Assembly (NCBI RefSeq): GCF_006345805.1
Contig: NC_043002.1
Coordinates: 102,114,001-102,178,000, forward strand
Length of the DNA: 64,000 bases
From: Octopus sinensis
Lineage: Eukaryota
Reading direction: 5' to 3'
Of the stretch, positions 46,544 through 64,000 are shown piece by piece. The position numbers were made by a program, and so were the translations under genes. The notes under the pieces were generated by a model that worked only from the letters and a program-made list of their open reading frames with translations, was not told where the DNA came from and did no database searches. How positions within the stretch are numbered: the stretch's first letter is position 1; the number at the start of each line of letters is the position of its first letter.

Positions 46544-48390
46544 CTGTTTAATTACATGATACTTTCAGATTAACACCTACACCCACACAATACATGTTTC
46601 TATTTCCAGCTGGAGGTTTTGGCAATGCTGGGTTGGCGCACATATATGTGTGTTTGTGAGTGCATAAATACTTACATAGCCCCGTCGTCATGAGACTTCT
46701 AAGGGCAGATGGCCTTTCAAATGCCTATTTCAAGGTTTTCATCTACAATTATGCCGATTACTCCATCTTAAAGAACACATGGTTTATTTCTTCACTTATG
46801 AGAGAAACACCTTTTACTTGCCAGCGTCCTGTTCTGACCGGATTGCGAAATAAACCTTGCATTACATGATAATCCGCTTCTACAATTACACCTGAGACTG
46901 ATAACAACAACATCAACGTAATCAGTAATACGACACGCACGCACATACATATACACACACGTGCACACACATCGCTTAAATGTATGTATGATTTTATAAT
47001 TATACACGAAAGTATAGGCGCGCGAGTGTATGTGTATTGTATTTCGTCCGTCTCTCTAATTCGAATAACTGGTCTGTGATACCTGTGCGTGCACTAATGA
47101 GGAAGCTTCTAAATCATTGTTAATTCTTCTATGTTTAACAGTAAGATTTTCCTCATGCTACACCTTACTTTAAAAAAGTCACAAGAACACATTTGATAAA
47201 TGTCGTACGAACAACAATCTGTTAAATAAGAATACTCGTGCGTCAGTTGCATCTGATCATAAATTTTCTCGTTCAAGCGTTACTGGCCATCTGCCTATGA
47301 TGCGATCAATTCTAAAAACAATAACAATACAAACAAAAATACAACAAAAAGAAAAGGAAGCAAGCAGTTTTCATAGTCTGTGTAACTCCTTCTTATTTTT
47401 GTTTCAATGAGGCTAACAAAAGATTTAAAATTGTTATATACATAGCCAAGTTGATAATGAAACAGAAAAAAAAAGAAGAGGAAGAATATCAAACAAGTAG
47501 ATATGAGTAATGCATACGGATGTTAGACGTTATTCTATCTCATTATGCCGTCTCTCTTCTCTTCTCCATATGATCAGAACTGATAAACAAACATATTGAA
47601 ATCTTTGCTGACAGAGCGGAAACCGATCTCTGCTACGCACAGTCTATTGATCGATTGCTTTATACAAACTATCATTTTTAAGTATCTATTTCCACGTAGA
47701 TTTGTCATTGGTCAGGAAGCTAATTTATCTATGTAATTAATCACTAAATTCGCAGAACAACTAAAAGAAAACTAAATAGATAAACCTTCATTGTAGAGAG
47801 AAAATGTGTCATACAAGAGAATGGCTATTTAGTAGGACGATAATACAATTTCCCGGTTGTTTTATATATTTATATAAAATGTAGATCCACACAATTCAAT
47901 ACATATGTGTGTGTATAAATATATATCCAGACAATGTAGGGCTGCATCACAGTGGGAATAGAATATCGCAAAACAGAAGTAACGAAAGAACAATCGCAAA
48001 ATATAGAAATAAATATGCAACTGCACCACGGGGAAGAGCCGGGAAAGAGCGCATAGGGTGAGGAATGTTACTCCCATTACATGAAATAGAAATTAAAGAA
48101 AGATTATGTAAGAGAAAAATAGTGATGTTTATAGTAATAAGCGTATAGACACATCAATCCTCGCCATTTATTCATATATATATACGTATATACGAGCCCA
48201 AGTGTGTTTTGTATGAAGGAAAATGGAGCTTCTTATCTATAAATGCTATTATACCTTATATATTATGTGTGTATGCATATATTATATCTATCTATCTATC
48301 TATCTATCTATCTATCTATCTATCTATCTATCTATCTATCTATCTATCTATCTATCTATCTATCTATCTATCTATCTATCTATCTATCTA

Positions 48391-48707
48391 TCTTTTCCGC
48401 AGGCTTTTCTTTCCACGGGTAAACCTCACCTGTCCTCCCCTTTACACTTCATATTGACATTTCTGTGATAACGATCCCTATTGATCATTTTTTTTTCCTC
48501 TCCCCCCCCCCTTTTTTTTTTTTTTTTTTTAACCCCCCTTATTTTTGTCCTCTTTTCTCTCCTTTTACGATCCCTTTTGATCGAACCTCCCCCTTCCTTT
48601 TTTTTTTTTTTTTTTTTTTTTTTTTTTTTTTTAATACCTTCAAAAGAAAAGCTCTACCTTGTAATTTGTTCTATCTGTGTGCAGCCCTGTGTGGCTAATA
48701 AAGAAAC
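48391..48707 (+). mobile_element. Tx1-like subfamily A, 3'UTR-only 5'-truncated copy (A0)
   Basis: Matches the last ~315 nt of copies A1-A3 (ttttccgcaggc ... gccctgtgtggctaataaagaaac); (TATC)n on both sides. Confidence 0.9.
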
Positions 48708-48737
48708 ATATCAATCTATCTATCTATCTATCTATCT

Positions 48738-50368
48738 TACGCAGGCAATTTTCACCCCTTGCTAGTTGCATAATCAGCAACCACAAACCTACAACCCACA
48801 CCCCTGCCATCAACACCAACACCACCGGCAGTAACAACAATAACAAAACAACAACAAACTTCGCCGAGGCGATAAAAGAAAAGGTAACAAAAGTTTCGTT
48901 TACTACACAACAGATTAAAGATTGCAGAAACCTTATTACAAATCAAAACGGAAAAATACTCTTACACATACCTCAGCACATACTGAATGAGGAGAAAAAA
49001 AGACAATTGTATATAAAATCACAAATAAAAAAACAAAAAGTCCAGAAAAGGCAAGCACAGACAAAGTCGAAAAGTGCTTACGCCCCATCTGGGGATACAA
49101 GGATTGTGTGACTTGGGCGAACAAGTTCGCACACGTACAGGTGGTTTTCAGAATGAAGAGTTGGCGAAGAAATTCTCAACGATAACCCTTCATTCTGATG
49201 AACTAACGTTGACACCGAGTTACCGCGGCCAGAAGGTGACGAAAGTCATTATCAGTGGTGTCCCCCAAGTGACTACAACACTGTGGATTACATCCGCATT
49301 AACATCCGAAATGGAGGACTTAAACATCCTAGATATCGGTGTTTCGGAAAACAAGGACTGGCTGGGAAAGAGAATAGAGTTCCTCTTCCACATAAATCAA
49401 GAGGACATAAATAAAATCCCCACCCACGTACATCTTGAGGATGGCCGCAAGTTATACGTAGTAGTCGAGGGCAGAAGGCCACGATGCTATACATGTGGCA
49501 GTGAGGCACACCTCAAAAAGGAGTGCAAATCTGCCGCAAAATTACAACAACAACAACAGCCACAGGAAAAATCACAAAAGCCAGGATTATTGCCCACACC
49601 ACAATATGGACAGCTAGTCAAGAAGCTGTATGCGGAAATGCAGGAAAAAACAACAAAGAACAAGCCAACCCAACCAAACAACACCAACACCAGCGCCAAG
49701 AACAGAATCATCACCACCAACAACAAATAAACCAATTCCAACACCAAGAACGACAGCAAAACCCAAAGGAACAGAAAAACAAAGAAAACACACACAAACA
49801 CTCAACAACCAACAACAACGAAAACAACAACACAACCACTTACACAGACATACATAGAAGCCCACAACATACCCCTACCCCCTTCTGATTCCTCAGAAAT
49901 TTCGTCGGAAGACGAAACCAGTGAGGAATGGCAAAAAGCTACAAAAAGAAGGAAAATAAAGAGCAGAAACACAACCAAACCAAATGCAAACACGAACAAA
50001 GCAGGGGGAAATACATCTCCCGAAGACATTTCAAAACCCAACGCAAACAACAGCCACACCAACACCACAAAAACATATACAGCAAACATGCTCACAGCCA
50101 TAGACACCAAAAACACAAATTTGATGGAATACATCCAATCAAAAACAAAATAACAGAAGAGGACATAAAAACAAACAATCACCCATACACAACACCACCA
50201 GACCACATCAAAATATTACACATCTCCAAAGTCTGCACCACACACTCAAAGGCATTTTCCCCAGTGCGGTTGGTAAATGCCAAAAAATATCTCACAAAGA
50301 AGAAACTGTACTGGGATCTTCTCGAGGACAAACCAACGGAGGAGAAAGCAAAAACTTTCGAGCAGTAA
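48738..50368 (+). pseudogene. ORF1 (gag-like nucleic-acid-binding protein) of copy A1, split by frameshifts
   Basis: Overlapping ORF pieces 48677-49111, 49074-49730, 49523-49888 and 49928-50368; CX2CX4HX4C knuckle CYTCGSEAHLKKEC at 49485-49526; low-complexity Q/T/N/K C-terminal region; stop at 50368, 31 nt before the ORF2 ATG. Confidence 0.8.
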
Positions 50369-62500: not shown

Positions 62501-63304
62501 GGTCAGAGCGACGAAACCGTTCTGCACGCACTCGTTCAGTGTCCAACAATTTCCGACCTGTGGGCTTATGTCGAACAACTGCTGTCACGTGTGGGACGAG
62601 TCGGTTTATCAGCTGAGTCTATCGTCAATATTGTCACGCCTCCTTCCTTCAAACGGGAAGGAAGAGCTATTTCATCATCCTTGTGGCTATGGCGAAAGAA
62701 TGTATCTGGTGGACGCGTCTGAAAGGATTGGAGACAAACACTTTCCTCTCTGGTCAATCTCTCATCAACTTCTTCAAGTACCACTTGAAAAGGAAAGTGA
62801 GAGTAGAGAGGCAAGTTTTGTCTAGCGAATGTTTTAAAAAAAGATGGGTGAATGTAGCAAGAATGGCACGTATGAATGACGAAGCCACCTTGAGCATAGT
62901 CCTATGAACCCAGAAATCGAAAACAGAGAGTTGCTTATTTGCAAAAAAAAAAAAATAAAAAAAGAAATATAAATGTGACTTCATTGACCGAGGTTACCGT
63001 GGTCTTTTCCGCAGGCTTTTCTTTCCACGGGTAAACCTCACCTGTCCTCCCCTTTACACTTCATATTGACATTTCTGTGATAACGATCCCTATTGATCAT
63101 TTTTTTTCCTCTCCCCCCCCCCTTTTTTTTTTTTTTAACCCCCCTTATTTTTGTCCTCTTTCTCTCCTTTTACGATCCCTTTTGATCGAACCTCCCCCTT
63201 CCTTTTTTTTTTTTTTTTTTTTTTTTTTTAATACCTTCAAAAGAAAAGCTCTACCTTGTAATTTGTTCTATCTGTGTGCAGCCCTGTGTGGCTAATAAAG
63301 AAAC
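59585..63304 (+). mobile_element. Tx1-like subfamily A, 5'-truncated copy (A3) with near-intact ORF2
   Basis: Starts inside the endonuclease region (cagactccacaatcc), about 40 codons after the ORF2 start seen in A1; full 3'UTR; (TATC)n on both sides. Confidence 0.93.
59616..62907 (+). CDS. ORF2 polyprotein: APE-type endonuclease, reverse transcriptase and CCHC zinc finger (L1/Tx1 clade); N-terminally truncated, with small frameshifts near the C-terminus
   Basis: 1069-aa open frame 59616-62825 with endonuclease motifs GDWN, YLDRI, TDH and RT motifs NFRPITLLNAD, DQSKAFDRVDH, SVRQGCPLS, AYADDV. The true C-terminus continues in frames 62387-62722 (CPRC..H..C) and 62683-62907. Confidence 0.93.
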
Positions 63305-63472
63305 ATATCTATCTATCTATCTATCTATCTATCTATCTATCTATCTATCTATCTATCTATCTATCTATCTATCTATCTATCTATCTATCTATCTATCTAT
63401 CTATCTATCTATCTATCTATCTATCTATCTATCTATCTATCTATCTATCTATCTATCTATTATCTATCTATC

Positions 63473-64000
63473 ACAAAGGCATTCTATAGAGGATTAGTGG
63501 AGGGAGGATGCGACGACGAACTCGGGCAGAGTCTGGCGTCGACGAGGAACACTGACCCGCCTGTTCAGGACAACTTTCGGGCCGGGACCTATGAACAATC
63601 ACCAAAGATCCCTGGCCTGGCAGTGCTATCGAGAGCATTACCTGTTCGGGATAAGCTCTACAGACACGGTTCCAGACACACTGGACCGACTTGCCCGAGA
63701 TGCGGTCAGAGCGACGAAACCGTTCTGCACGCACTCGTGCAATGTCCAACCATTTCCGACCTGTGGGTTATGCCGAACGGCTGCTGTCACGTGTGGGACG
63801 AATCCGCCTATCGGCCGAGTCTATCGTGAGAATTGCTCCGCCCCCTTCCCTCAACCGGGAAGGCAAGGCAGTTTTCATCGTACTGGTGGCCATGGTGAAA
63901 GAATGTGTGTGGTGGACTCGAGCGAAAGGATTAGAGACAAACACTTACCTCTTGGCCAATCGCTCATCAACTTTTTCAAGTACCACTTGAAAAGGAAGGT
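63473..64000 (+). mobile_element. Tx1-like subfamily B, 5'-truncated fragment (B2), cut by the window end
   Basis: Near-identical to B1 from ~58613 onward but with a different 5' breakpoint; preceded directly by (TATC)n. Confidence 0.88.

Follow-up and report, generated by a model that had tools for sequence, protein, structure and literature searches.

A head-to-tail array of probable Tx1-clade retrotransposons with (TATC)n at its junctions in Octopus sinensis

Why should six copies of one retrotransposon lie one behind another on a single strand, with a (TATC)n microsatellite at every boundary that can be read? This question is raised by a 64,000-nucleotide stretch of the Octopus sinensis genome (assembly GCF_006345805.1, contig NC_043002.1, forward-strand positions 102,114,001 to 102,178,000; hereafter the window), in which copies of one retrotransposon that lacks long terminal repeats (a non-LTR element) occupy positions 48285-64000. 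We argue that they represent a young family, made up of two subfamilies, of apurinic/apyrimidinic endonuclease (APE)-type elements of the L1 group, most likely of the Tx1 clade, and that (TATC)n is probably both the 3' tail of this family and its preferred integration site.

Six copies and their (TATC)n boundaries

Searching the window by BLAST with the longest unit of the array, we recovered six copies (C1 to C6), all on the + strand, and found no further copy of the family in the other 48 kb. Positions within copies were numbered against C2. As a correction to the first-pass annotation of this DNA, C2 is a full-length and not a truncated copy. The six copies begin at six distinct points and share one common 3' end (Table 1). 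Neither long terminal repeats nor terminal inverted repeats were found, and variable 5' truncation combined with a common 3' end is what characterizes a long interspersed nuclear element (LINE). G+C content climbs from about 35% to 47-54% over 50-64 kb of the window.

Table 1. Features of the array, in window coordinates; copy positions refer to C2
Feature	Position	Strand	Description
(TATC)27 tract upstream of array	48285-48392	+	From repeat scans and junction reading
C1, subfamily A	48391-48708	+	3' 318 bp only (C2 positions 5102-5411); tail (TATC)7, 48709-48737
C2, subfamily A	48738-54148	+	Full length, 5,411 bp, from position 1; tail 54149-54210
C3, subfamily A	54210-58365	+	5'-truncated at C2 position 1293; ORF2 frameshifted; tail 58366-58389
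C4, subfamily B	58390-59548	+	5'-truncated at about C2 position 4134; tail (TATC)9, 59549-59584
C5, subfamily A	59584-63305	+	5'-truncated at C2 position 1775; tail (TATC)42, 63306-63472
C6, subfamily B	63473-64000	+	5'-truncated at about C2 position 4361; reaches window end
Conserved 3'-terminal box	63262-63305	+	AGCC-CTGTGT-GGCT hairpin, AATAAA, GAAACA; recurs at all visible 3' ends

The (TATC)n tracts were located with Tandem Repeats Finder and a regular-expression scan of the window. Reading the junctions directly, we observed (TATC)n on the + strand at all six 5' junctions and at all five visible 3' ends, that is, at 11 of 11 junctions, at one locus and in one orientation. The first-pass annotation had described both the TATC boundaries and the shared orientation of the copies, and direct reading bore it out on each. 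The 5' junctions show 0-2 nt of microhomology with the TATC tract (2 nt, TC, in the case of C1), and their phase relative to TATC varies between copies. The 3' phase is constant: the sequence ...CCCTGTGTGGCTAATAAA(A)GAAA(CA/GT) closes each of the visible 3' ends and passes directly into TATC, and poly(A) is absent from all five. Outside the array, TATC tracts of at least three units make up about 1.3% of the window, and nearly all of this is one 585-bp array at 37990-38574. Given so low a background, the coincidence of copies and TATC is not a matter of chance. The 585-bp array is itself compound, with recurring TTTACA and TATA interruptions that form a higher-order pattern.

Could an L1-like element have inserted at random into a microsatellite-rich region, the TATC tracts being later expansions of its tails? 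The window is indeed very rich in simple repeats, and LINE tails are known to seed microsatellites (PMC3812793). However, random insertion leaves unexplained the TATC at every 5' junction and the single orientation, as well as the presence of six copies within 15.7 kb and of none in the remaining 48 kb. We consider it the least probable of the explanations weighed here.

The copies fall into two subfamilies, a split that the first-pass annotation had missed. C4 and C6 (subfamily B) are 95.5% identical to each other and 82-84% identical to C1, C2, C3 and C5 (subfamily A). The 3' untranslated region (UTR) of subfamily B is shorter than that of A, and the last ~40 nt are conserved. C4, which provides the visible 3' end of subfamily B, ends in ...GGCTAATAAAAGAAAGT and continues into its TATC tail, and the TATC association is common to both subfamilies. 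That two lineages this divergent share it argues for the association being a heritable property of the element rather than a flank transduced on one occasion with a 3' end. Together with the different 5' starts, it also argues against duplication of a segment, a possibility that had already been discounted at first pass from the start points.

An artefact of assembly or of duplication, in which reads from different TATC-flanked copies were mis-joined or in which the copies arose by unequal crossing-over, would be another route to such an array. The subfamily A copies C2, C3 and C5 differ by about 50 indels per 3.7 kb, mostly of 1 nt and roughly two thirds of them in homopolymers, a pattern typical of noisy long-read assemblies, and the repeats and microsatellites at this locus are prone to mis-assembly. 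Yet truncation point, tract length and subfamily differ from copy to copy, which duplication cannot yield; and even if joins were wrong, each piece would still be a copy flanked by TATC, and the inference about the target would survive. We regard an artefact as very unlikely.

How might the array have been built? In the mechanism that we propose, the RNA of the element would carry a (UAUC)n end behind the conserved 3' box. Within a (TATC)n/(GATA)n tract, the endonuclease would cut the strand that reads (GATA)n, and the freed 3' end would anneal to the (UAUC)n of the RNA and prime reverse transcription, thereby fixing the orientation. Such target-primed reverse transcription would begin at the fixed junction of box and tail, and imprecise joining at the 5' side would leave copies truncated at their 5' ends, with microhomology of 0-2 nt. 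By splitting the tract and adding a tail of its own, each insertion would leave target on both sides, so that copies could accumulate head to tail. A tail that doubles as target would account for copies that lie in one orientation, with a 3' phase that is constant and a 5' phase that varies, for their truncations and for the regeneration of the target. We infer, then, a nick in the GATA strand, priming by annealing of the tail, a preference of the endonuclease for such tracts and a specificity that would extend genome-wide.

Coding capacity and place among LINEs

What kind of LINE is the array element? Open reading frame 1 (ORF1) of C2 (49074-49730) encodes a CX2CX4HX4C knuckle (CYTCGSEAHLKKEC), which scores 18.9 bits against zf-CCHC, just below the cut-off. 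ORF2 matches the Pfam domains Exo_endo_phos (E=3.5e-11) and RVT_1 (E=9.9e-31). In C2, ORF2 begins at 50400 and many frameshifts break the frame; about 100 bp that are present in C3 and C5 are also absent from C2, at C2 position 3137. The longest open frame is that of C5 (59616-62825; 1,069 aa) and includes the APE and reverse transcriptase (RT) domains. Owing to the 5' truncation it is without the first ~48 endonuclease residues, and comparison with relatives places two departures from the true frame, one near 62385 and one near 62680. With the frame restored, the true ORF2 C-terminus of C5 includes the zf-RVT motif CPRCGQSDETVLHALVQCP and ends near 62904. None of the six copies as assembled holds an intact ORF2. 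In view of the homopolymer indel pattern described above, the ORF2 frameshifts may be artefacts, and frameshifts elsewhere in the window may likewise be.

Aligned with the human L1 endonuclease, the ORF2 product retains the N (VNARGL), E (ISETRL), Y (VYAP) and D/N (GDWN) residues, and the TDH motif is present in the C5 translation. The top solved-structure match in a search of the PDB was human L1 ORF2p (E=2.5e-49, residues 19-825). R2 proteins scored far below it, and no R1-clade endonuclease structure was among the PDB matches. PF13966 was found in relatives of the element. These sequence matches support its assignment as an APE-type non-LTR retrotransposon of the L1 group.

Is it also a member of the Tx1 clade, as the first-pass annotation had proposed? 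RRM/CCHC-knuckle types of ORF1 have been linked to Tx1 (PMC5203782), and the array element has both a CCHC knuckle in ORF1 and the C-terminal Cys motif of ORF2. Surveys of molluscs report Tx1 and no separate L1 clade (PMC10294476). Whole-protein searches, including one with a 13-sequence profile, returned no named Xenopus Tx1 or Kibi/Koshi sequence. Fungal and coral matches did bear the name 'Transposon TX1', an automatic label that we did not use as evidence. Our reference for the clade is an APE- and RT-encoding LINE (L053; CBDAUV010000067.1, 1751-7269) whose 3' UTR and A10 tail enter a U2 small nuclear RNA (snRNA) gene at about U2 position 33; APE-type targeting of U2 is known for Keno, of the Tx1 clade, alone (PMC4640811).

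We built a neighbour-joining tree from 432 columns of the RT domain, with 100 bootstraps. In it the array element, its close relatives and the Keno-like L053 formed a clade with 100% bootstrap support, and human L1 and fungal and algal L1-like proteins fell outside it. Scored against the array element, the RT of the Keno-like element reached 223 bits, that of human L1 137 bits and those of the outgroups 39-67 bits. Hence the domains, the L1-group affinity and the clade shared with a Keno-like element to the exclusion of human L1 all agree with the earlier proposal; the part of it that would call for a named Tx1 reference did not find one, and membership in the Tx1 clade, judged via the proxy only, is likely.

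L053 was recovered in a scan of prokaryotic genome contigs, which yielded mis-binned eukaryotic DNA. It is labelled as an Anaerolineae metagenome-assembled genome (MAG) and is a eukaryotic contig, on which U1 snRNA and 5S rRNA genes adjoin the Keno-like LINE/U2 insertion. P0095, labelled as a Herbaspirillum MAG, is a eukaryotic contaminant similar to L053.

The 3' box and the tails of relatives

Is the TATC tail shared by the relatives of this family? The 3' box is kept in relatives whose tails are not TATC. Its hairpin of 4 bp (AGCC, a loop of 5-6 nt, GGCT) stands directly before AATAAA. We compared the hairpin at window positions 63262-63305, 59503-59548 and 12392-12433 and, in an Argonauta hians contig (L007; BAAFZT010000007.1), at 11146-11185 and 4802-4843. 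In one copy the pairing is kept through two compensatory changes (GACC...GGTC), and short interspersed nuclear elements (SINEs) have G-U variants. The hairpin is possibly a recognition element for the reverse transcriptase.

The Argonauta contig contains a full-length relative that ends ...CCCTTGTGGCTAATAAAAGAAATA, then ATTATTATTATTATA. A second 3' fragment, upstream of it, ends in (ATT)17 and starts directly after an ATT-type SINE tail; it has an ATT-type repeat on either side. At 4480-5365 of the contig we found three tRNA-like SINE copies in tandem and an older one, each ending in GGCCCTTGTGGCTAATAGAGAAATCTATTT, which is the 3' box of the LINE. The Argonauta SINEs are likely partners mobilised by this LINE lineage, and they too are clustered head to tail. 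In the window itself, a sister LINE family is represented by a 3' fragment with a truncated 5' end (about 12300-12433), which carries the box AAGCCCTTGTGGCTAATAAACGA and an (ATT)n tail. We rejected this fragment (12290-12460) as clean two-sided evidence: its 5' flank reads (ATC)6 and then ATTATT, and the boundary of the element is ambiguous. A metagenomic relative (L010) has the box, then CACACACA. The contigs of the closest relatives, L001 (71% identical) and L008 (81%), end before the 3' end or ~30 nt short of it and do not include a tail that could be read.

Among cephalopod elements, the two octopus subfamilies have (TATC)n tails, the Argonauta elements and a different octopus family have (ATT)n tails, and further elements possibly have (CA)n. 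Perhaps Tx1-clade LINEs and their partner SINEs have radiated in cephalopods, keeping one 3' hairpin box and switching the microsatellite tail and target between families? We put this forward tentatively, as an idea for which the case falls a little short of balanced.

The ORF2 C-terminus, queried in the restored frame, matched two cephalopod proteins, one from Octopus bimaculoides, with 97% identity across 37 residues, and one from Argonauta hians, with 60%. The O. bimaculoides protein P0102 (UniRef A0A0L8GCS6) is a chimera, in which an ORF2 C-terminus of the array's family (97%) is joined to ORF1 of a neighbouring Tx1-like element. This gene model spans two transposon copies, which implies same-strand head-to-tail neighbours in O. 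bimaculoides too. Other searches for the family were unproductive: scanned with an exact 21-mer taken from the 3' end, metagenome contigs yielded a single match, bacterial or phage and due to chance, and genome contigs yielded zero, a protein scan of viral contigs gave zero, and an exact-protein look-up found no identical protein on record.

Arrays also occur in the closest outgroup family (~44% identical), which lacks a microsatellite tail and whose contigs are filled with head-to-tail units of ~6.44 kb. At the junctions between these copies we found neither a microsatellite nor an Rfam RNA gene. LINE arrays of this ~44%-identical, APE- and RT-encoding type are carried by L002/L003 and by L015-L052 (CAXXMW01), a MAG labelled 'uncultured Arenicella sp.'; the array LINE of L015-L052 is a mis-binned eukaryotic repeat in a 'bacterial' MAG.

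Elsewhere in the window, a Tx1-like element that is more diverged is represented by its 5' portion at 22089-24230 (- strand), with a piece of ORF1, the endonuclease and the RT to about residue 507, at 36-51% protein identity. We rejected it as evidence on tails; its 3' part is missing and it has no TATC flanks. Pieces of other, unrelated LINE reverse transcriptases or endonucleases lie at 13493-13981 (-), 17038-18178 (+) and 20105-20656 (+), and a 146-bp unit is duplicated in tandem (93% match) at 42025-42322, beside an (AT)n tract. No host gene was recognised in the window, which is mostly repeats and simple sequence, and an Rfam search of it found nothing.

The tail as target, and its precedents

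Several points weigh against our reading of (TATC)n as a target that the element seeks. The flank evidence comes from a single locus. The TATC array at 37990-38574, potentially an empty target, holds no element insertion. Five of the six 5' junctions adjoin the tail of the preceding copy, and for this reason specificity for element-independent (GATA)n tracts comes down to one junction. Read-through transcripts could have co-inserted neighbouring copies, in which case the array would record fewer than six events. The indel-rich differences among copies suggest residual error of an unpolished long-read assembly, and the order of the copies is provisionally that of the assembly. Lastly, the Tx1 reference in the RT tree is a proxy recognised by its insertion site and not a named Tx1 sequence.

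Perhaps, then, the element homes to tails and to nothing else? On this account (TATC)n would be the element's own tail, annealing of RNA to DNA would favour old tails, the endonuclease would have no preference for (GATA)n, and free TATC microsatellites would not be preferred. The five 5' junctions formed by earlier copies' tails fit such homing, as does the large TATC array that stands empty, and the ~44%-identical outgroup arrays, with no microsatellite at their junctions, suggest that arraying may be a habit of the lineage independent of any microsatellite target. Because five of the six 5' flanks are older tails, homing of this kind is hard to separate from a preference for (TATC)n as such; the two differ only in which protein or RNA step gives the specificity. 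What speaks against homing is the 5' flank of C1, the sole TATC flank that is not visibly an element tail. It comprises 27 units of TATC, and the DNA upstream of it is unrelated, AT-rich and without the 3' box of the element. This tract is presumably a remnant of the original target microsatellite; had the first insertion been random, the chance of its landing in TATC would have been about 1.3%. We think homing to tails alone unlikely, and we continue to favour a family for which (TATC)n is tail and preferred target at once.

Such a family would have precedents. Kibi and Koshi, Tx1 elements of teleost fish, are likewise APE-type L1-group LINEs, with one microsatellite flanking them on either side in a fixed orientation (PMC4494074). 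In Kojima's criterion, a microsatellite-specific element has the repeat at more than 20% of its flanks genome-wide (PMC4494074). A crocodilian Tx1 group found in (TTCC)n/(TTTC)n also has the microsatellite on both flanks and a fixed orientation (PMC3812793). Compared by description and not by sequence, the array element differs from both in its host, a cephalopod mollusc, and in its probable target, which is the mixed purine-pyrimidine tetranucleotide (TATC)n/(GATA)n where theirs is polypyrimidine. The Keno-like L053 falls in the same fully supported RT clade as the array element, but the two proteins are only 30% identical, and where Keno ends in poly(A) and targets a gene, a microsatellite would play both parts for the array element. 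Dong, of the R4 clade and specific for (TAA)n, and Waldo/Mino, of the R1 clade and specific for (ACAY)n/(AC)n, resemble the array element as we read it in being microsatellite-specific and in having a tail repeat that is also the target repeat. They belong to other clades, however, and Dong has a restriction-like endonuclease, whereas the array element matches L1 endonucleases. Zepp of Chlorella, another member of the L1 group, forms head-to-tail arrays of 5'-truncated copies, each inserted into the tail of an earlier copy. Its tails are poly(A) and its sites telomere-proximal, whereas the octopus array has (TATC)n tails and an internal locus.

Is the target itself new? The microsatellite targets recorded for LINEs in the literature searched are, in the Tx1 clade, (TC)n, (TTC)n and (TTCC)n/(TTTC)n and, in other clades, (TAA)n, (ACAY)n, (AC)n and (TG)n. 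In the literature searched, with Repbase and Dfam outside the search, we found no LINE family that targets GATA/TATC in any permutation of the repeat, in keeping with the first-pass remark that none was known. A 2026 annotation of Octopus vulgaris (PMC13282606) describes 13 L1-Tx1 families that have been active recently. Their 421 near-full-length insertions have a mean length of ~5.4 kb, which matches the 5,411-bp array element, and the annotation mentions no target or tail specificity for them. The family of the array is probably already present in octopus repeat libraries as L1-Tx1, without a note on its target. We conclude that, among the targets of this known, repeat-seeking kind of retrotransposon, (TATC)n is probably new.

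The array overturns no current view, and it flags TATC-linked arrays as loci where assemblies are at hazard. If our reading is true, no retrotransposon specific for (GATA)n would have been described before this family and, in molluscs, no Tx1 lineage specific for a microsatellite. The Tx1 repertoire would gain a new, non-homopurine target, and part of the microsatellite-linked clustering of LINEs in octopus genomes would be accounted for. Target-specific LINEs are natural models of safe-site integration and of site choice made jointly by endonuclease and RNA tail. Sister families that share the 3' box and carry other tails offer matched pairs for swap experiments, and the cephalopod tail-switching series, if true, would be a natural set in which to ask whether the endonuclease or the RNA tail sets the target.

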